Shown here: positions 9,931 to 61,340 of the stretch, in pieces
Layout of the letters: each line of letters begins with the position of its first letter
Position numbering within the stretch: position 1 is the stretch's first letter
Position numbers and translations under genes: made by a program
The notes under the pieces: model-generated
What the model was told of the DNA's origin: nothing
What the model saw: only the letters and a program-made list of their open reading frames with translations
Databases searched by the model: none
Assembly: GCA_002269645.1 (NCBI GenBank)
Contig: NIVC01001520.1
Span: 62,001-126,000, forward strand
Length of the DNA stretch: 64,000 nt
Source of the DNA: Macrostomum lignano
Taxonomy: Eukaryota
Reading direction: 5' to 3'

Positions 9931-10409
9931 GATTCTGGCCCTGAACCCGAAGAGAAACGAAAGAGATCATTGTGTAAATTCGAGTTTGTGATCAAGTGCC
10001 ATTTGAAATTTATGAAACCGTGATGACGTAGTGAACCCCCCCCCTCCAAGGCAGCCAAAATTGAAAGTTCCGAGTTGATAAAAATAGACTCGAGTAATTC
10101 TGGAATTGCCTTTTTACACAATTACTAGCTACTGTTGGAACTTTATATTTTTGTGCCTGAAGGCATTACCTGACAGTGCTACATCTTATCTATATCGTCA
10201 CTACCTAGTGACCTGCAAGATTACAAGCAGACGCGTGTCGAATATTTTAATCTATAGTAAACACAAACTCCACGGGATTCCCTCCTAACTCGGAACGGGA
10301 ACTGTGTGCCTCGTTATAAAATTGGACCCTTCCAGAAGCTCGCTATGTAAGATTGTATCTTTTCTGCCACCAACTGAAGCAAACTTCGTCTCTTGGTGCT
10401 GCGTCAATC

Positions 10410-36203: not shown

Positions 36204-41070
<4,867 letters not shown>

Positions 41071-41766: not shown

Positions 41767-44700
41767 TTAGGTGGGCGTGGCCACCTTCTCAGCTACGAGA
41801 TCCAGCAGTTTAGCAGTGCGCAGTCGCCAGTTGCTGGGCACTTTGCTAACGAGCACCACAGCTCGCCGTGCCTGGGCTCGGCCGCTTCGCACAGGGCGGC
41901 CACGCGTCTCTGCTGGTCCTCGGTGCCGTGCTGCAGTTCAAATCGGCGCCAGTTGGCCCAGGCGTCGCCGAAGTCGCTGTCCAGCTTCACAGCCCGCTGG
42001 AACCAATCTCGGGCTTTGTTAATCTGCCGCTCGCACCAGAACAGCCGGCCAACCGCCAGCAGCACGTGCGGATCGTGCTCGCATTTCTTAGTAGCGTCGA
42101 CCGATTTCGCTCTCCGCTGCGGCCTGGCCTCCATGAAGATGGCTTCAGCCCATAGCTGGCCGGCTGTGGGGCACTGCTGCAGAGCGCGGGACATTGTGGC
42201 CGCGGCCATCTGTGGCTGTCCGGACTTCAGTTCGGTGCGGACGGCTTCCAGCCAGAGCTGCGGCACGCGGGGATTGTTGACTCGGGCCCGTTCCAGGATA
42301 CTGCGCGCTCGGGTCGCCTGGCCCTAGTTCGTGTGTTTTCAAGGAAGGGGTTGAAAGTTTTTTCAGAAGAAAAAAATACTCGCTGCGGCTTACTCTTAGT
42401 AGATTAAGAGAAATAACATTTAAGGGGGAGAAAAGAGGGTGGATAATTGACAAAGAATTATTTTGAATGTAAGGAACTGGATTCCCAGCTAACTGAAATC
42501 TCTAAGGAACTGGATTCACAGCTAACTGGAATCTCTAAGGAACTGGATTCCCAGCTAACTGGAATCTCTAAGGAACTGGATTCACAGCTAACTGGAATCT
42601 CTAAGGAACTGGATTCCCAGCTAACTGGAATCTCTAAGGAACTGGATTCACAGCTAACTGGAATCTCTAAGGAACTGGATTCCCAGCTAACTGGTATCTC
42701 TAAGGAACTGGATTTCCAGCTAACTGGAATCTCTAAGGAACTGGATTTCCAGCTAACTGGAATCTCTAAGGAACTGGATTCCCAGCTAACTGGAATCTCT
42801 AAGGAACTGGATTTCCAGCTAACTGGTATCTCTAAGGAACTGGATTCCCAGCTAACTGGAATCTCTAAGGAACTGGATTTCCAGCTAACTGGAATCTCTA
42901 AGGAACTGGATTCCCAGCTAACTGGAATCTCTAAGAAACTGGATTTCCAGCTAACTGGAATCTCTAAGGAACTGGATTCCCAGCTAACTGGAATCTCTAA
43001 GGAACTGGATTCACAGCTAACTGGAATCTCTAAGGAACTGGATTCACAGCTAACTGGTATCTCTAAGGAACTGGATTCCCAGCTAACTGGAATCTCTAAG
43101 GAACTGGATTCCCAGCTAACTGGAATCTCTAAGGAACTGGATTCCCAGCTAACTGGAATCTCTAAGGAACTGGATTCACAGCTAACTGGAATCTACATGT
43201 ACGAAGGCCGATTAACATTGAAATCGAACAGGATTTCTTAAACCTAACGATAATAAAATAAAGTCGGGAGCTCACCTGGCCCATCTCCAGCCTAGCCAGC
43301 AGCAGCCAGAGCGGCACTGACTGACGGCATCGCTGAATGCCTTCATTATAAGCGGCCCGAGCGGCCTCAACGTTGCCCTCCTGTTCGGCAATCTGTCCCA
43401 GCATCATCCACATCTTGTCAAATTGCGGATAAGCGCGCAGGCCTTCGTTTAGAAGCGCTTTAGCCTGCTCCAGTTCGCCCAGACACCACTCCAGCCTAGC
43501 CGATTTCATCCACACCCTAGCCGTTGAGGCTTGATTTCGCGCCCGCAGCAGCAGCTTGCGCGCTCGTTCAAAATCGTTATTCTCGCTCTCCAGCCGAACG
43601 GCGGCTAGCCAGATCTCCTCGGAATTTGGATTGGCTTTGAACGCGTTGGCTAGAATATAGCGAGCTCCGGGTATGTCGTCGGCTAGCCACTTGGACTTGG
43701 CGCCCATCAACCAGAGAGCTTCGGCGGTAGGGCATTTACTAACAGCATTGACTAGCAGCGATTCCAGAGCCTCTCTGGTGCCGTGGTTCTTTTCAAAATG
43801 AGCCGCCGCCAGCCAGACAGACTTCTTAGCCGGGAAAGCGGCAATGAGTTTGGCGTACACAGCCCTGGCGCATTCGAACGCCTCTCTGGCTGTGAAGCCT
43901 TCCGCATCCGTTAGCCACTGTCGCTTCCTATCAGGCTCGTCAATGCCGTGGCCAACCACAGTGCGAACAATGGCCCTGGCCGTTTCCATGGAGCCGCTAG
44001 ATTCGCACTCTTCCGCATCTTTTAGCCACAAGTCGCGATTGATTTCAACGCCGGCCACCTGCAGTGCGGCCACGGCGCGATCGATAATTTTGCCAACCAT
44101 TGGCAGATTCTTGTGAGCCTCTTCTAGCTTGGCAGCGGTGATCCAGATCAGCCTGTCAGTCGGCACATTGTCTCTGGCCTGGTTCAGCACGCTTCTAGCC
44201 GTCTCGTAGGTCTCGAGTTTGGCCAGGGCTAGCCAGAGGTCCACACTAGTTGGACAGCATTCAACTGCACGGCGTAGCATCACCCGGGCGTCCTCGGGCT
44301 CTTCGAGTTCAACGGCCAGCTTCCACAGTCGAACAGAGCTGGGCACCTGTTCGAGTGCTTTGCGGAATACTCGACGCTTGCGCTTGGGCTCGGATTCCAG
44401 CTCGGCGGCGCGGACCCACAGCCGGACAGACTGGGGCAAATGATTGATGCCCTGGGCCACCACCGCTCTGGCTTGGTCAGCCGGGATCAGGCGGGACGCT
44501 TCCATCCAGATGTCCTCGGATCTGGGCGGCGGGTAAGAGGGGGTGACTTGGAGTTTTTGTTAATTAATAAGCCGCCACAGCTAGCAAGCCTAATTAAATA
44601 GAGAATGATACTCTCTTTCTCTTAGAGAGGCACTTATTGGACAGTTTGCCACCCATTGGACAGTTTGTCACCCATTGCACATTTTGTCACCCATTGCACC

Positions 44701-46316
44701 AGTTTGTCACCCATTGCACATTTTGTCACCCATTGCACCAGTTTGTCACCCATATTGCACAGTTTGTCACACACTGCACGGTTTGGCACCCATTGGACAG
44801 TTTGGCACTCATTGGACAGTTTGGCACTCATTGGACAGTTTGGCACTTATTGGACAGTTTGCCACCCATTGGACAGTTTGTCACCCATTGCACATTTTGT
44901 CACCCATTGCACCAGTTTGTCACACACTGCACAGTTTGGCACCCATTGGACAGTTTGGCACTCATTGGACAGTTTGGCACTTATTGGACAGTTTGCCACC
45001 CATTGGACAGTTTGTCACCCATTGCACATTTTGTCACCCATTGCACCAGTTTGTCACACACTACACAGTTTGGCACCCATTGGACAGTTTGGCACTCATT
45101 GGACAGTTTGGCACTCATTGGACAGTTTGTCACTCATTGGACAGTTTGGAACCCATTGGACAGTTTGGCACTCATTGGACAGTTTGGCACTCATTTCACA
45201 GTTTGGCACTCATTGGACAGTTTGGCACTCATTGGACCAGTTTGGCACTCATCGGACTCACTTAGCGCCTATTTGGTGCAAAAGTCAGTAGTAATGTCTG
45301 TCTCCTTTTCAATCCCAATCTCACCTGGGACACTCCTCAGCGCCGCGCATAATCAGATTCCTAGCCTCCTGCATCTTTCCAGTGAGCTCCTCCAGCCTAG
45401 CTGAGGCAATCCAAGCAGGCGGATGCTTCAAATTGCTTTCTCGCACAGATTTCAACAGCAGGCGGGCCTTTTTAACATCGTTAATATCGGCGCCGTGCTG
45501 CGGTATAACGGAATTGAGATCGGTCAGGTAGCCCATAGGGTCAACCACAGTCTGGCCAGTGACAGAGTCGGCAGCCTGAGTCAGTTTAATATCCATTAGC
45601 GAAGTCCGGGCCTGACCAATCTTTTTCATATCGATATCGGCGCCGCCGGCGCTGCTGGTGCTGGCGCCGCCCCATGGTGTTGCTATGCCGCCTTGCAGCT
45701 GCTCGCGCAGGTCCACCTGGGCGGTGGTCTGGCCGGCGGACAGGCCCTTAGCCAGCAGGCTGTCCGGCGCCGGGGTGAACTTCTCAGCTCGGGGATTTCT
45801 CTGCCGTTTATTCCGAGCATCGCCAACCTCCGGCAGCGACAGCCACTCGTCCTCGGACACCAGCGCCAGGTCGCGCTTTAAATCGACAAACTGTTGCTGA
45901 ATTTTCGGTCGCTCCTTGCGAAATTTTTCCATCTCTTCGCGAAACCGGCGCTCCCGGTGCTCCCTGCGGCGCTCGTCCATTCGATCGTCTACGCTCGAGT
46001 AGATCCGGTCCGCTTCCTCGTCGTCCTTCTCATACGGATCCCTGGTGCACAGGGAGCCGCCGTAGCCGCTGAACTCGTCGTAGTTGGCGTCGTTAAGATT
46101 CTCGTCTTCGCCTTTCTCGTCGTCGTCGTGCGCCGGCTTTTTAGGCGGCGGCATGTGCCGCTCGTCAGGGGCGTCGTCGGCCTCGCGGGCCGGCCCAATG
46201 TCCGACCGGGTGGTGAAGCCGGTGGCGCCGCGGCCAACTCCGGGCACGTAGCCGGGCGGCGCCGGCATGCCGATGAATTCGCGCCGCTTGCGCGACACCA
46301 AAGACTGGGGAGCGGA
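41767..46316 (-). CDS. PRPF6: Pre-mRNA processing factor 6 (U5-102K, HAT repeats); no genomic ATG at the predicted start and an apparent 1-nt frameshift near the C-terminus
   Basis: Exons 45325-46316, 43276-44521, 41767-42323, phases 2,0. Motifs [49 protein letters not shown] and EPRHGELWC. About 930 aa once the frameshift at about 41853 is corrected. Confidence 0.95.
42470..43195. repeat. 33-bp minisatellite (AAGGAACTGGATTCCCAGCTAACTGGAATCTCT)n, PRPF6 intron 2
   Basis: Direct reading. The period is a multiple of 3, hence the spurious 264-aa ORF. Confidence 0.97.
44636..45250. repeat. ~19-bp minisatellite (CCCATTGGACAGTTTGGCA and variants), PRPF6 intron 1
   Basis: Direct reading, mixed variant units. 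Confidence 0.94.
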
Positions 46317-46331
46317 CTGGAAGAGTTGGGG
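46317..46331 (-). promoter_or_regulatory. 3' splice acceptor (CCCCAACTCTTCCAG) at the PRPF6 5' end; candidate trans-splice site
   Basis: Pyrimidine tract plus CAG directly before TCC GCT CCC CAG TCT TTG GTG TCG CGC AAG, in phase 0 with the PRPF6 frame. No in-frame ATG back to the TAA at 46395-46397. Confidence 0.6.
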
Positions 46332-46509
46332 TCGGTGCGGTCTGGGCTGCGACTTTTGCGCTCGGATAGGATGCTGGTATATGCATGAGCTTCTTTATCA
46401 GCTAACATGAACTTCTGCATCACCTAATATGAGATTCTGTATGGTTCTGCAAACTGTTTTATCTCAAGGACCAGATAAAGAATTCAGATCATGGCTGTGA
46501 GCCAGATAA

Positions 46510-46690
46510 GAAAGGAAAGGCGAGAGAAATAGAAGATTAGAGATAAGAGACAGAGGAGAAGAGAGGAGATGGGAGATAGAATTAGAGAAGAGATAAGAGA
46601 GGAGGTGAGAGAAGGGAGAGGAAAGAGGAGAGGAGAGGAGAGGAGAGAAGAGGGGCGAGAGGAGAGTGAAGAGATGAGAGGAAAGAAGGA
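46510..46690. repeat. Purine-rich (GA/GGAGA) low-complexity tract between INTS2 and PRPF6
   Basis: Direct reading. Confidence 0.85.
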
Positions 46691-47344
46691 TTGCTATTGT
46701 GAAGTTTCGAAGGATCCGATGGTCTTCTATGAGCTTCTAAGGATGAGCTTCTAAAAACAATAAAGTGCACCTCCTGCCAGCCAAGAGTGGCCGCAAAGGG
46801 CTCACTCGGGATGTACAGTGACTCGCTCATCATCATCAGGTATGTACACTCCGCTTTCTGGGCTCGTGCAGTTCCAATGTGTGCATAACCAAGCTTTGAA
46901 TTACAGAATAGAAACTAATAACACCGCATCTATGAATATAACACAATCTAAAACCCTAACTGCCAGTGTCCAGTGGTTTAAACAAACAAAAAATAACAGA
47001 AAAGTCGGCGATGCTGCTTACAGTAGCATGATTGCAGCTGAGTGTATTTTTCTTCCTAAAGAAAAAATAAGAAACGATTTAACCACAAACTTTAGTATAT
47101 GAAGTAGCGCTGAACAGGTAAGTAATTTGATGTACGACAGTATGTGTTAGTACGGGCGGGTAATTGGCGACATCATGCTGTACACATATCGAGGATTAAT
47201 TCGCCCATGGCAACAGGTAACTGTAGTATGTGTTCAATTGATAATTTTGGCTATAAAATGCATTGAAAACTTACACTCGTACTAACAAGAGCAGAATTGT
47301 CAGTAAAGTATAAGATAAAGTAAACAGGGAGGGTAGGAGCAGTC

Positions 47345-47870
47345 TACTGAGGATCAGACAGAGGGCAGCAGCGGTCTACTGAGGATCAGGCAGAGGGCAG
47401 CAGCGGTCTACTGAGGATCAGACAGAGGGCAGCAGCGGTCTACTGAAGGATCAGAGGGTAGCAGCGATCTACTGAAGGGTCAGAGGGTAGCAGCGATCTA
47501 CTGAAGGGTCAGAGGGCAGCAGCGGTTTACTGAAGGATCAGAGGGCAGCAGCGGTCTACTGAAGGATCAGAGGGCAGCAGCGGTCTACTGAAGGATCAGA
47601 GGGCAGCAGCGGTCTACTGAAGGGTCAGAGGGCAGCAGCGGTTTACTGAAGGATCAGAGGGCAGCAGCGGTCTACTGAAGGATCAGAGGGCAGCAGCGGT
47701 CTACTGAAGGGTCAGAGGGCAGCAGCGGTCTACTGAAGAATCAGAGGGCAGCAGCGGTCTACTGAAGAATCAGAGGGCAGCAGCGATCAACTGAAGGATC
47801 AGAGGGCAGCAGCGGTCTACTGAAGAATCAGAGGGCAGCAGCGATCAACTGAAGGATCAGATGGCAGCAG
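47345..47870. repeat. 29-bp minisatellite (TCAGAGGGCAGCAGCGGTCTACTGAAGGA)n just downstream of the INTS2 stop
   Basis: Direct reading. Starts about 70 nt after the INTS2 stop, so it may lie in the 3' UTR. Confidence 0.95.
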
Positions 47871-47939
47871 CGGGCTACTGGAGAAACAGGGGGTGTGGCC
47901 TGTGCACGCCTGCCGTACTTCAGTCCCCGCAGATCAGTG

Positions 47940-50900
47940 TCACTCCGGTGAAAAGTACAGAGTCCTGGGCACCAGGGTTCGCCGTACAATAGCATCCAGG
48001 GTAGACTCGGCCAGAACATAGCACAGCTGATACCGCTGGGGCAGGGTCAGGCTCTGTAGATCGCGACGATAGCGAGCCACGGTTTCCGGGGGCAGTCGAA
48101 ATTCTACGGGCACCGGCGATTTCAGCGTTGCCAAGGTGACGCGACACTGGTACATTAGGCCGAGCAAGTATTGAGAAGCTGGCCTAGCCAGTTTGGGGAA
48201 CGCTTTGCACATGTTGAGCACCGCTGCCATGCATTGAATGGCAAAATCAGCCTTTTCATCCAACGAGTGAACCTGGGAATTGGCGATTGCAAAAGTATTG
48301 GTTGTGATATCGTGACACGATGAACTTTGCAATAGGTTGCATGCACTGAAGTGTTGACTCACAAGCAGTGGAGATTGTTATTGACCGGCTTAGAGATTTG
48401 TTTGGTTTTGTATTCAACCCCCACCCCATGCGCGCGATTGAATCTGTCTGCACCCACCACCTCATTACTAATCAAAATAAATATTGTCAGCCTAGCTCTC
48501 AAGCGAGCACTTTTTACTCCTGCAATTCCACACTTCTGCCTCGGTTAACAAAGTTATCACATTGGTGTAAAGAAGAAATTCTGTGGGCAGCTCATAGCTG
48601 GGGTGTGGCTGGTTTGGGTGGCCAGATCATGGAAGAGTAATAGCTGGTTTGGGTGGCCAGATCATGGAAGGGTCATAGCTGGTTTGAGTGGCCAGATCAT
48701 GGAAGAGTAATAGCTGGTTTGGGTGGCCAGATCATGGAAGAGTAATAGCTGGTTTGGGTGGCCAGATCATGGAAGGGTCATAGCTGGTTTGAGTGGCCAG
48801 ATCATGGAAGAGTAATAGCTGGTTTGAGTGGCCAGATCATGGAAGAGTCATAGCTGGTTTGGGTGGCCAGATCATGGAAGAGTAATAGCTGGTTTGGGTG
48901 GCCAGATCATGGAAGGGTCATAGCTGGTTTGAGTGGCCAGATCATGGAAGAGTAATAGCTGGTTTGGGTGGCCAGATCATGGAAGAGTAATAGCTGGTTT
49001 GGGTGGCCAGATCATGGAAGAATCATAGCTGGTTTGGGTGGCCAGATCATGGAAGAGTCATAGCTGGTTTGGGTGGCCAGATCAGGAAGGGTCATAGCTG
49101 GTTTGGGTGGCCAGATCATGGAAGAATCATAGCTGGTTTGGGTGGCCAGATCATGAAAGGGTCATAGCTGGTTTGGGTGGCCAGATCATGGAAGGGTCAT
49201 AGCTGGTTTGGGTGGCCAGATCATGAAAGGGTCATAGCTGGTTTGGGTGGCCAGATCATGGAAGAATCATAGCTGGTTTGAGTGGCCAGATCATGGAAGG
49301 GTCATAGCTGGTTTGGGTGGCCAGATCATGAAAGGGTCATAGCTGGTTTGGGTGGCCAGATCATGAAGGGTCATAGCTGGTTTGGGTGGCCAGATCAGGA
49401 AGGGTCATAGCTGGTTTGGGTGGCCAGATCATGGAAGAATCATAGCTGGTTTGGGTGGCCAGATCATGAAAGGGTCATAGCTGGTTTGGGTGGCCAGATC
49501 ATGGAAGGGTCATAGCTGGTTTGGGTGGCCAGATCATGAAAGGGTCATAGCTGGTTTGGGTGGCCAGATCATGGAAGAATCATAGCTGGTTTGAGTGGCC
49601 AGATCATGGAAGGGTCATAGCTGGTTTGGGTGGCCAGATCATGAAAGGGTCATAGCTGGTTTGGGTGGCCAGATCATGAAGGGTCATAGCTGGTTTGGGT
49701 GGCCAGATTATGAAGCAATTCATCTGTATTTACCTGATTAGACAGCACAGTAAGGCTCTCTAGTACGGTAGCCGCCTTATCCAGCGCAGCCTGAATTCTG
49801 TACTGGCCAGCCAGAAATCCCATTAGATTGATATTGAAAATCCTAGCAGCCGGATCGGCATTAAAAGCCAAATGGTCCAGTATGAAATCCAGGCAAATAT
49901 GCATGGATGGTATGGCGCAGGCGGTGAATGGAACCAGCCGGAGCGGATAGCACTGCCAGTGAACCACCTGGCACAGGGCTCGCTCCCGATCCGATATGAA
50001 CAACGAATGAACAAAGGTGGCCAGAATACGACGAACGTGTCTGGGCGAGTCCAGGCATCGCTCCAGCAGTAGCTGAACTGTGCAAGCGGCCTGAGTAGCT
50101 AGCAGGCTCCGACGGAGCGGCTGACAAGGCGAGCCTTTGTCCGGGTGCTGCTGCTGCAGCTGCTGTTGCTGAAGCATCTGCTGCTGGTGAAGCTGCTCCA
50201 CCTGATGCCGGCCATCTAGACAGGCCAGAGCAATCTGCCGCTCCCAGTAGGACTCGGAGGCGCGCAGTGATAGTTCAATGATTCGAAGGCAGAGCTCTAG
50301 CAGGGCCGGCTGGCGATAGGCGCAGTCTGGCAGTGCGGCGACAACCTGCGGGCCAGAGGCGTCTCAAAGTCACTTGCGTAGCCCCAGAGTCGGTGCATGT
50401 AACACAGATAAAATAGGAAAGAAAAGACTTTGGACGATTCTAAAACGACAAGGTGTCACGGAAAAAGCCGCCAAAAAGTCGGCAAAGAGTCGCTTAAGAG
50501 TCAATCTGAGGCGGTTTATTGTCTGCGACTCTGAAACGACTCTGGGTGCTGTAGAGTCGTATCGGAAACGGTTTATTGTCTGCGACTCTGAAATGACTCT
50601 GGCGCTTTAGATTTGTATCTGAGGCGGTTTATTGTCTGCGACTCTGAAACGACTCTGGCGCTGTAGAGACGTATCTGATGCGGTTTTATTGGAAAGCTAA
50701 GCGCTAACACAACGACTTTTGGGTGACTTTTTCGCTACTATTTTGCGATTCTACAACTCACGTGAATTTCATTTCAGTTGTTTGAGTCGTTAAAATTCGC
50801 AGAGTTGCCCCAAGAGTCACTAGTGAGGTATTTGCAATGACTCTTTAGCGATTTTGGTCACGTTAAAGTTTTCAACGGGATAGACAATAAAGCCAATCAA

Positions 50901-56900: not shown

Positions 56901-58616
56901 ATAATCAAGGATGATTGGGAAGGATAATCAAGGATGATTGGCAAGGATAATCAAGGATGATTGGCAAGGATAATCAAGGATGATTGGCAAAGATAATCAA
57001 GGATGATTGGCAAGGATAATCAAGGATGATTGGCAAAGATAATCAAGGATGATTGGGAAGGATAATCAAGGATGATTGGCAAGGATAATCAAGGATGATT
57101 GGCAAGGATAATCAAGGATGATTGGGAAGGATAATCAAGGATGATTGGCAAGGATAATCAAGGATGATTGGCAAGGATAATCAAGGATGATTGGGAAGGA
57201 TAATCAAGGATGATTGGGAAGGATAATCAAGGATGATTGGGAAGGATAATCAAGGATGATTGGGAAGGATAATCAATGATGATTGGGAAGGATAATCAAG
57301 GATGATTGGGAAGGATAATCAAGGATGATTGGGAAGGATAATCAAGGATGATTGGCAAGGATAATCAAGGATGATTGGCAAGGATAATCAAGGATGATTG
57401 GCAAGGATAATCAAGGATGATTGGGAAGGATAATCAAGGATGATTGGCAAGGATAATCAAGGATGATTGGGAAGGATAATCAAGGATGATTGGAAGGATA
57501 ATCAAGGATGATTGGGAAGGATAATCAAGGATGATTGGCAAGGATAATCAAGGATGATTGGCAAGGATAATCAATGATGATTGGCAAGGATAATCAAGGA
57601 TGATTGGGAAGGATAATCAAGGATGATTGGGAAGGATAATCAAGGATGATTGGCAAGGATAATCAAGGATGATTGGCAAGGATAATCAAGGATGATTGGC
57701 AAGGATAATCAAGGATGATTGGGAAGGATAATCAAGGATGATTGGGAAGGATAATCAAGGATGATTGGGAAGGATAATTAATGATGATTGGGAAGGATAA
57801 TCAAGGATGATTGGGAAGGATAATCAAGGATGATTGGGAAGGATAATCAAGGATGATTGGCAAGGATAATCAAGGATGATTGGCAAGGATAATCAATGGA
57901 GATTGGCAAGGATAATCAATGGCGATTAGCAAGGATAATCAAAGACGATTGACAAGGATAATTAATGGAGATTGGCAAGGATAACCAATGGCAAGGATAG
58001 TAAGGGTTGATTATTCAAATATAATCGAGACAACTTCGAAAAAAGAATATTTTAATAGTTTTGAAGAATAAAAAACACTAACAAAAATTGTCAAAAATAT
58101 CAATGAGCATGTAAAATAACAACGCGAATCGCCTCACCGAAGCAACATCCTGGCCTGCTGGTCCGGCCGGTCGCAGGATTCGAACTCGCCACTGGACGCG
58201 GCTGACGGCCAGACCACGGAGACGAAATCGCCAATCAGGCCGCACTTATCGACAACCCGCCGCTCCAGGTCCACCTTAGCGTCGTGCCCGATGGCATCAA
58301 ATTCTACGCTATAATGCAAGGAATTGGCATAGTCAAGCACGTGACCGAAATGTAAGCTATTCGCTTCCGGTTGGCAGGCTGCCAATAGTTCGGCCAGATC
58401 TAGCCGGTCCCGATGCCAGGATAGCAGCGGCGCCAAGGCCAGCAGCTCAGATTCGGACCAACTCGCAACTAGACGGCCGCACCGAACAGCTCGATAGAGT
58501 TTGGCAAAGTTGCAGTCTTCGTCGCCGCCGCTAGCCGAATTGAAATTGCTATTGTAATAACTGCCAGCACTGTGCGGTTGCCGGTTCGCTTCGCAACCAT
58601 TCGAAGATGGCTGCAT
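47940..58616 (-). CDS. INTS2: Integrator complex subunit 2
   Basis: Exons 58138-58616, 54476-55445, 53416-53769, 52531-53055, 51310-51714, 49734-50345, 47940-48272, phases 2,0,0,0,0,0, totalling 1225 aa. Recognisable blocks LTPQLLMLYYVL, LWLRLYQLMPRRL, HLPAHCVLQLL and IPSMHICLDFI. Confidence 0.9.
48595..49710. repeat. 35-bp minisatellite (ATAGCTGGTTTGGGTGGCCAGATCATGGAAGGGTC)n, INTS2 intron 6
   Basis: Direct reading. Confidence 0.97.
50505..50690. repeat. ~56-bp tandem repeat, 3-4 copies, INTS2 intron 5
   Basis: CGGTTTATTGTCTGCGACTCTGAAA at 50512, 50569 and 50625, partial at 50681. Confidence 0.88.
51787..52470. repeat. 25-bp minisatellite (GGGGGCAGTCACCGAATGACCGGAT)n, INTS2 intron 4
   Basis: Direct reading. 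Confidence 0.97.
53105..53325. repeat. 29-31-bp minisatellite (TCTCACCAAACTAAGCACTCAATCGATA-like), INTS2 intron 3
   Basis: About 7 copies. Confidence 0.92.
54060..54320. repeat. CT-rich low-complexity tract, INTS2 intron 2
   Basis: Direct reading. Confidence 0.8.
55585..57990. repeat. 23-bp minisatellite (CAAGGATAATCAAGGATGATTGG)n, about 2.4 kb, INTS2 intron 1
   Basis: Direct reading. The unit is itself a near-dimer of CAAGGATRAT. Confidence 0.97.
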
Positions 58617-58717
58617 AATAATTGCCCGCTGTAACAAAAGAAAAGAGCCGAATGCCTTTTTTACATTCTGTAGATGGTTTTACATCAGAGTGCACTTCCC
58701 TTATCAAACAGTTGGAA

Positions 58718-59169: not shown

Positions 59170-61340
59170 TCAACTGCGCAATAGATTCTTCTGCAGCACG
59201 TAGGCGTCCGGTGGCACAATTCGCTTATAATAGTTATACGCCGTATCGACAATTTCAAAGCCGAATTTCTTATAGAACGCCAGAGCGCCTTCGTTGCTAG
59301 TCTGCACGTGCAAAAATATATTGTCAATATTTTTATCTCGCGAACATATTTCGAACACGTATTCTAATAATTTAGTGCCGACGCCCAGCTCCCGGTAGGG
59401 CGCCAGGCAGCCCAGCGTCATGATGTACAGCCGGCGCTGCCCAGCCTCCGATTGGATGCGGCAGCAGACTGCGCCGACAACGATATCGTTGAAGTAGGCC
59501 AGTCGGCCCAGTTCGCCGTTCTCCAAAATGTCGTCGTAGAACTTGTCGGTGTAGGAAACTGGGAACACAACCTGGGTTTGAGTGTTGGAATTTGCTCAAG
59601 TTTCTCATTACCATGGTAACAAGATTCTGCTGATAATTAGCTAAAGCACTCGGAAATATTGATTATCCAGGCACTCGGCAATATTAATGATTATCCATGC
59701 ACTCAGCAATTTTAATGATTATCCAGGCACTCGGCAATATTAATGATTATCCAGGCACTCGGCAATTTTAATGATTATCCATGCACTTGGCAATTTTAAT
59801 GATTATCTAGGCACTCAGCAATTTTAATGATTATCCAGGCACTCGGCAATATAATTGATTATCCATGCACTCGGCAATTTTAATGATTATCCATGCACTC
59901 GGCAATTTTAATGATTATCCAGGCACTTGGCAATTTTAATGATTATCTAGGCACTCAGCAATTTTAATGATTATCTAGGCACTTGGCAATTTTAATGATT
60001 ATCCAGGCACTCGGCAATTTTAATGATTATCCAGGCACTCGGCAATTTTAATGATTATTTAGGAACTCGGCAATTTTAATGATTATTCAGGCACTCGGCA
60101 ATATTAATGATTATCCAGGCACTCGGCAATTTTAATGATTATCCAGGCACTCGGCAATTTTAATGATTATCCAGGAACTCGGCAATCTTAATGATTATCC
60201 AGGCACTCGGCAATCTTAATGATTATCCAGGCACTTGGCAATCTTAATGATTATCCAGGCACTCGGCAATCTTAATGATTATTTAGGAACTCGGCAATTT
60301 TAATGATTATCTAGGCACTTGGCAATCTTAATGATTATCCAGGCACTTGGCAATCTTAATGATTATCCAGGCACTCAGCAATCTTAATGATTATTTAGGA
60401 ACTTGGCAATTTTAATGATTATCTAGGCACTCAGCAATTTTAATGATTATCCAGGCACTCGGCAATATTAATGATTATCCAGGAACTCGGCAATCTTAAT
60501 GATTATCCAGGCACTCGGCAATCTTAATGATTATCCAGGCACTCGGCAATATTAATGATTATCCAGGCACTCGGCAATCTTAATGATTATCCAGGAACTC
60601 GGCAATCTTAATGATTATCCAGGCACTCGGCAATCTTAATGATTATCCAGGCACTTGGCAATCTTAATGATTATCCAGGCACTCGGCAATCTTAATGATT
60701 ATTTAGGAACTCGGCAATTTTAATGATTATCTAGGCACTTGGCAATCTTAATGATTATCCAGGCACTTGGCAATCTTAATGATTATCCAGGCACTCGGCA
60801 ATCTTAATGATTATTTAGGAACTCGGCAATTTTAATGATTATCTAGGCACTCAGCAATTTTAATGATTATCCAGGCACTCGGCAATCTTAATGATTATCC
60901 AGGCACTCGGCAATCTTAATGATTATCCAGGCACTCGGCAATTTTAATGATTATCCAGGCACTCAGCAATCTTAATGATTATCCAGGCACTCGGCAATCT
61001 TAATGATTATCCAGGCACTCGGCAATTTTAATGATTATCCAGGCACTCAGCAATCTTAATGATTATTTGGGCACTCGGCAATTTTAATGATTTTATCCGA
61101 GCACTTGACAATCTGATTATTCAGGCGCTCTTAAATCTGAATGATTATCCAAGCACTCGGTAGCATTCAAAGCATTTAACCTACCTGGTTGATAATTCTC
61201 AACTGCCTAATATTGTGCTGAGTGATGTCACCCAGTTCGATGCGACTGTCACTAGGCAGCTTGGATTGTTTGCAAGAATTGACATTAGCAGTGTTTTGTT
61301 CAATAGAAACTGCTTCATCAGAGTGAACTACTGATACCAT
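59170..61340 (-). CDS. NAA50: N-alpha-acetyltransferase 50 (NatE catalytic subunit, GNAT)
   Basis: Exons 61185-61340 (MVSVVHS...SRIELGDITQHNIRQLRIINQ) and 59170-59571 (VVFPVSYTDKFY, AYFNDIVVGAVCCR, LYIMTLGCLAPYR, LHVQTSN, NYYKRI), joined in phase 0. Confidence 0.95.
59660..61160. repeat. 28-bp minisatellite (TGATTATCCAGGCACTCGGCAATTTTAA)n, NAA50 intron
   Basis: Direct reading. Higher-order block duplication between about 60175 and 60595. Confidence 0.97.

Follow-up and report, generated by a model that had tools for sequence, protein, structure and literature searches.

A PRPF6 copy of Macrostomum lignano that may take its start codon from a trans-spliced leader

Where does translation begin in a gene whose conserved reading frame opens without a start codon? 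The question is raised by PRPF6 in the 64-kb stretch of DNA analysed here (the window). An earlier reading of this DNA, based on its letters only, held that the PRPF6 frame has no ATG from the upstream stop to the Met of GMPAP. Our own reading of the minus-strand frame confirmed this: two in-frame stops close the frame upstream (TGA at 46400-46398 and TAA at 46397-46395; minus strand, as are all gene features given below), and the first genomic in-frame ATG, the Met of GMPAP (46266..46268), lies 16 codons inside the conserved N-terminus. From the sequence, we infer a splice and an initiation event by which this copy of PRPF6 probably takes its AUG from a leader joined in trans at 46317|46316.

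The PRPF6 locus and its copies

The window encodes PAA66923.1 exactly and is contained exactly in contig NIVC01001520.1 of the Mlig_3_7 assembly of Macrostomum lignano, the contig that carries this protein. Its PRPF6 copy, on the minus strand, corresponds to Mlig032204.g1 (g1 hereafter). A search with the full-length protein gave a 99% match to M. lignano PRPF6 and matches of 61-67% to PRPF6 of many other animals, with 65-67% identity to many metazoan PRPF6 over 98% of the length. Together with this similarity, the families listed for the g1 product, PF06424 (PRP1_N) and TPR/HAT, identify it as a PRPF6 orthologue. This is the domain set of PRPF6/Prp6, a protein of U5 and of the U4/U6.U5 tri-snRNP with PRP1_N and HAT/TPR repeats. 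Compared with the known PRPF6/Prp6 proteins, that of g1 is ordinary and would differ only in how its start codon is supplied.

Coding exon 1 (45325..46316) opens with the codon TCC (Ser), where the leader is proposed to join and where the 5'-partial PAA66923.1 begins. It is followed by coding exon 2 (43276..44521) and by the annotated exon 3 (41793..42323), and the annotated protein has 922 aa. Exon 3 starts at tandem acceptors 6 nt apart, at 42323 and 42317 (CTAG|GGCCAG|GCG). The annotated upstream acceptor adds Gly-Gln to the product that we derived from the window and gives LEMGQGQATR; the downstream one gives LEMGQATR, which aligns more closely with other species.

At 90% identity, the protein falls in a cluster of three NCBI proteins from the Mlig_3_7 annotation, BOX15_Mlig032204 g1, g2 and g3, all three flagged 'partial'. 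The paralogous loci lie on NIVC01003110.1 (g2) and NIVC01003520.1 (g3), in a species described as a hidden polyploid (PMC10468722, PMC8629364).

The acceptor and the sequence upstream of it

The candidate acceptor closes a pyrimidine-rich tract (CCCCAACTCTTCCAG, 46317..46331), with its AG at 46318-46317 and TTCCAG as its last six bases. The sequence-only reading had placed a phase-0 acceptor six codons upstream of SRKRR. The acceptor is there, TTCCAG|TCC ending at 46317 and the exon starting at 46316 in phase 0, but the distance is seven codons (SAPQSLV). Despite the miscount, the 17-letter peptide predicted from it was right, and it matches the conserved N-terminus of flatworm PRPF6 (MSVQSLVTKKRKEFIG). 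The motif [T/C]TNCAG is reported as enriched at the trans-splice acceptors of M. lignano (PMC8629364). The sequence TTCCAG|TCC at 46317|46316 fits this motif, and 46316 is the only phase-0 position with it in a scan from 150 nt upstream to 45 nt downstream. Given its frequency in the window (0.0026 per position for [TC]TNCAG), the 27 open codons together would be expected to have about 0.07 phase-0 hits by chance, and the single codon aligned with the Met of the orthologues 0.003.

A second phase-0 AG, unmentioned in the earlier reading, is found 12 nt downstream of the first (TCCGCTCCCCAG|TCT, 46305..46306) and would start the exon at 46304. Its six bases, CCCCAG, do not fit [T/C]TNCAG, whereas those of the first acceptor, TTCCAG, do. 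A leader AUG joined at 46304 would yield an 11-letter start, and this in-frame acceptor could be the site actually used. The older protein models based on the ML2 assembly begin SLVS. We considered them as support for the second acceptor and set them aside as ambiguous, since they may mark where a protein-to-genome alignment began.

Just upstream of the first acceptor, at 46384-46439, a 22-nt unit is repeated 2.5 times and includes the in-frame stops; g3 has one unit fewer. Long and regular tandem repeats also fill the spacer and the introns of the region (47359-47880, 44634-45404, 42447-43241 and 38087-39565). Apart from the unit at 47359-47880 they give long repetitive ORFs, and their copy number varies among the three paralogous loci.

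Upstream of PRPF6 on the same strand is INTS2, whose last coding exon (47940..48362) ends in a stop at 47940-47942. The interval from this stop to PRPF6 (46317..47939), presumably an outron or intergenic spacer, includes a 29-nt unit repeated 17.8 times (47359-47880) and a CT-rich tract (46539-46690); neither AATAAA nor ATTAAA occurs in it. The acceptor could in principle serve cis-splicing, with the ATG supplied by an unrecognised upstream exon. Such an exon is highly unlikely, however. The sequence-only reading had found no ATG-containing exon nearby, and this held: nine stretches running from an ATG to a phase-0 GT occur in the 1.62 kb, none of them with a GT[AG]AG donor. The annotation agreed, no cis-spliced upstream exon being present in any of the three copies, and the next sequence upstream is already the 3' end of INTS2.

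The proximity of INTS2 is also relevant to the origin of the pre-mRNA. NAA50, INTS2 and PRPF6 are three conserved genes arranged head to tail on the minus strand. Same-strand genes of M. lignano have been called as operons when less than 1 kb apart after repeat subtraction and both trans-spliced (PMC8629364). The 1.62 kb from the INTS2 stop to 46316 comes down to about 0.9 kb once about 0.7 kb of repeats and low-complexity sequence is subtracted. Judging from this arrangement, the three genes may form one polycistronic unit, a plausible origin for the pre-mRNA. Between NAA50, an N-acetyltransferase gene (59170-61340), and the INTS2 acceptor downstream of it there is about 0.56 kb. A strong acceptor that matches the motif (TTTTGTTACAG|CGG, exon start 58628) precedes the first coding exon of INTS2 (in 58600-58640). 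Joining the leader at this acceptor would put its AUG in frame and place MRAII ahead of the ATG of INTS2 itself, which follows 12 nt downstream.

The leader, the N-terminus and the annotated mRNA ends

The sequence-only reading took it as established that flatworm leaders end in AUG. This is borne out for M. lignano, for which a single 35-nt leader ending in ATG is described (PMC8629364). It reads CGGTCTCTTACTGCGAAGACTCAATTTATTGCATG, and its 3' part, TTATTGCATG, is followed in the SL RNA gene by the donor GTAAG (PMC8629364). Some 30-39% of M. lignano genes are reported as trans-spliced, with conserved genes over-represented (PMC8629364, PMC5730564), and the terminal ATG of the leader is considered probably a start codon (PMC10468722). 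Cheng et al. (2006) demonstrated, in Schistosoma mansoni, that the AUG ending the leader serves as the initiator Met (summary in PMC9851317). According to that summary, the leader AUG lies in frame in 28% of S. mansoni's trans-spliced transcripts, and over 40 cDNAs need it. The same role is restated in PMC12582326 and PMC5832876. ORFs started in this way have been termed 'slORFs' (PMC9851317), and a dedicated tool, slORFfinder, exists for them.

At the level of sequence, g1 combines the features of a leader-AUG mRNA: an AUG-ending leader, an acceptor at the edge of the coding sequence, an in-frame junction and no upstream genomic ATG. The CAG that g1 carries at the start-codon bases of its sister copies would form, with the pyrimidine tract upstream of it, a consensus phase-0 trans-splice acceptor. 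Trans-splicing at 46317|46316 of a pre-mRNA that is perhaps the tail of a NAA50-INTS2-PRPF6 polycistron would join the 35-nt leader, whose last three bases are AUG. This AUG would then act as the initiator and restore a Met at the ancestral position, giving the 17-letter N-terminus. In common with the slORF mRNAs of Schistosoma (Cheng, Cohen, Ndegwa & Davis 2006, J Biol Chem 281:733), g1 has an AUG-ending leader and an acceptor in phase 0 with a conserved ORF, and its conserved N-terminal residues are not preceded by any genomic in-frame ATG. It differs from them in belonging to a free-living macrostomid and in having sister copies with a genomic ATG at the same three bases; moreover, junction and initiation were demonstrated there, whereas here they are read from the genome. 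The studies of trans-splicing and operons in M. lignano (Wudarski 2017, PMC5730564; Ustyantsev & Berezikov 2021, PMC8629364) concern the same genome, leader and acceptor motif. As a conserved housekeeping gene, PRPF6 belongs to a class that they report as enriched among trans-spliced genes. Their available text neither analyses the leader AUG as a start codon nor mentions PRPF6.

Several searches for traces of the leader or of this gene were negative. Neither an SL RNA gene nor the leader occurs within the 64-kb window, with up to 3 mismatches in 16 nt allowed, and the supplementary tables of PMC5816591, PMC8629364 and PMC12582326 have no Mlig032204 or PRPF6 entries. A protein database query in which the translated leader (VSYCEDSIYCM) preceded the N-terminus returned no M. 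lignano fragment, its best match being at 76% and its matches apparently limited to proteins near the query length. Likewise, a query with the N-terminal exon gave no M. lignano match, the species being matched by the full-length query only.

Comparison with orthologues shows where the ancestral Met stood. PRPF6 proteins of other flatworms (trematodes and cestodes) and of molluscs begin MSVQSLV or MSQSLI. The N-terminus is MSVQTLVTKKRKEFIG in Schistosoma, MSVQSLVTKKRKEFIG in Clonorchis, MSVQALVTKKRKEFIG in Calicophoron and MSQSLISKKR(R/K)EFLG in Spirometra and Mesocestoides, and a transcript-derived outgroup protein (P0122) has MSVQSLVSKKKKTFIG. The modal spacing before the G(M/L)PAP residue is 16 residues among the scorable full-length orthologues, and a leader Met at 46316 gives 17. 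By this alignment, the leader AUG would coincide with the ancestral Met to within one inserted residue. The start of PRPF6 is a genomic ATG in both Clonorchis sinensis and Schistosoma rodhaini. In each of these genomes an acceptor-like AG occurs just upstream of the ATG, ttttaccag|cATG in C. sinensis (L004 2990-3003) and aatag|gtgaaaATG in S. rodhaini (L005 2990-3003); in the latter, a leader AUG would be in frame.

Instead, the GMPAP Met inside the frame, or a near-cognate UUG or GUG of SLV, could start translation, with or without trans-splicing. The context of the leader AUG is weak, with U at -3 and U at +4, whereas the internal ATG has a purine, G, at -3, so that leaky scanning is possible; some database models of other species also begin at the GMPAP Met. 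We nevertheless regard such a start as very unlikely. The 16 residues upstream of this Met are conserved across flatworms, other animals and the three copies, and the models that begin there are shorter than the full-length orthologues of ~930 aa. Furthermore, an mRNA spliced to the leader has the leader AUG, in frame, ahead of the internal one.

The annotation indicates, indirectly, where the mRNA begins. The proteins annotated for g1, g2 and g3 all begin SAPQSLVS, at the codon right after the CAG or ATG triplet (46316 in g1). In the Mlig_3_7 annotation, a partial CDS appears to start from whichever in-frame codon comes first in the transcript model. The neighbouring solute-transporter gene fits this behaviour, as its 'partial' CDS begins QPMGHE, two codons ahead of its own ATG and without an AG in front. 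A PRPF6 model extending upstream would lengthen the ORF toward the stop 27 codons away, which places the model 5' end within 2 nt of 46316. Longer models of g2 and g3 would include their ATG and be called complete, so that these models must also end at the SAPQ codon. According to PMC5730564, the TBONE pipeline cut transcripts exactly at peaks of leader-trimmed reads, and cutting the mRNA end at a leader site would leave a 5'-partial protein that begins at SAPQ. Therefore, the annotated 5' ends are the best available, albeit indirect, sign of reads that join the leader to TCCGCT. Multi-mapping of reads among three near-identical copies blurs which copy is spliced. If the ATG of g2 and g3 is real, leader-trimmed g1 reads too short to reach the distinguishing marker, 41 nt downstream of the triplet (A at 46278, GAATTC, in g1 vs GAGTTC in g2 and g3), would map to all copies and account for the same cut in g2 and g3.

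ATG and CAG in the three copies

We compared the three loci by local alignments and exon by exon, outside the repeat-rich flanks. Both g2 and g3 read ...CCCCAACTCTTC-ATG-TCCGCTCCCCAG... where the window has ...CTCTTC-CAG-TCCGCT..., that is, TTC-ATG-TCC (9998-10000 in each of the two retrieved loci, L001 and L002) vs TTC-CAG-TCC in g1 (46319-46317). The difference amounts to two adjacent substitutions in otherwise near-identical sequence. Tandem-repeat changes in the introns aside, the block aligned around the gene start has no other clean multi-base substitution. Many variants are shared by g2 and g3 against g1, which makes g1 the more distant copy. The sequence-only reading concluded that this essential gene depends on trans-splicing. 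Since g2 and g3 carry a genomic ATG, as assembled only g1 needs the leader AUG, and the conclusion holds for that copy at most.

It is plausible, although we hold it tentatively, that the CAG of g1 and the ATG of g2 and g3 are both real, in which case a trans-splice acceptor arose on the very bases of the start codon, perhaps by way of ATG -> AAG -> CAG, where the intermediate AAG would already provide an AG. With more reserve, we consider possible that the CAG acceptor is real in all three copies and that the ATG of g2 and g3 is an artefact of the RNA-seq-based Pilon polishing of Mlig_3_7. Leader reads aligned end to end (...GCATG|TCC) would have overwritten cCAG with cATG, and every copy of the gene would then need the leader AUG, as the sequence-only reading proposed. 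This possibility is a version of the leader-AUG explanation and compatible with it. In both cases, g1 has the AG and lacks the ATG.

According to PMC5730564, the Pilon polishing of Mlig_3_7 drew on both RNA-seq and DNA reads, and that study aligned reads end to end with STAR. The base ahead of the triplet is C in both genome and leader, so two base changes suffice, and two adjacent substitutions amid near-identical sequence are what is found. In addition, the annotated CDSs of g2 and g3 start right after the triplet, even though ATG|TCC offers no AG for splicing. By our own estimate, a swap of codon for acceptor would also be likelier to date from the long branch preceding the genome duplication than from the short period that followed it. 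On the other hand, position -5, where the genome has T and the leader has G, is unchanged, when default mismatch limits should have let leader bases be written further upstream, and the same polishing left 1-nt exon deletions in g1 and g3 unrepaired. Besides, ATG at this place is the ancestral state in other flatworms, and g2 and g3 are sister copies, so that one real event in g1 explains the pattern.

A different account of the lost ATG is that g1 is a decaying duplicate which makes little or no functional protein, with g2 supplying PRPF6. Besides the change from ATG to CAG, a 1-nt deletion vs g2 in exon 3, between 41851 and 41850 (GG -> G; GCTCGGTTAGC -> GCTCGTTAGC), shifts the last ~20 codons of g1, and the species is a hidden polyploid with redundant copies. 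The frameshift could be a sign of decay rather than an assembly error. As a whole, however, decay is unlikely. Over 2708 coding nt, g1 and g2 differ by 12 substitutions, 11 synonymous and 1 non-synonymous (G713D), and under neutrality 12 substitutions would include no more than one non-synonymous change with a probability of about 7e-6. At position 713, the sole amino acid difference, it is g1 that keeps G, the residue of the outgroup P0122. The lost ATG, moreover, became a consensus acceptor and not a random triplet, and a deletion of GG to G is typical of PacBio undercalls, with a similar one, C5 to C4, in g3. The deletions in g1 and g3 look like homopolymer undercalls of a long-read (PacBio) assembly. 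That of g1 swaps the conserved 28-letter C-terminus for a 19-letter one; that of g3, a different 1-nt loss (L002, about 14169), shortens the annotated protein to 777 aa. The 11:1 synonymous excess places g1 under purifying selection, and translation must therefore begin upstream of the conserved 12-letter N-terminal segment.

Leader-supplied start codons are an accepted mechanism in flatworms, and the case of PRPF6 g1 leaves the general biology unchanged. Its value lies in part in annotation. Trimming of the leader, and of its ATG with it, is the reason why many deposited M. lignano proteins are 5'-partial; such models should gain the leader Met, and PRPF6 g1 is a clean and checkable case of this kind. 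The ATG/CAG difference either offers an uncommon look at an acceptor taking the place of a start codon, or warns that polishing with RNA-seq wrote leader bases into the reference genome at trans-splice sites. If both triplets are real, initiation was handed from genome to leader, among copies diverged by ~1.7% at synonymous sites, without moving the N-terminus by even one residue, and g1 would show dependence on the leader AUG in the very course of evolving. A core protein of the spliceosome may need a splicing reaction to get its own start codon.
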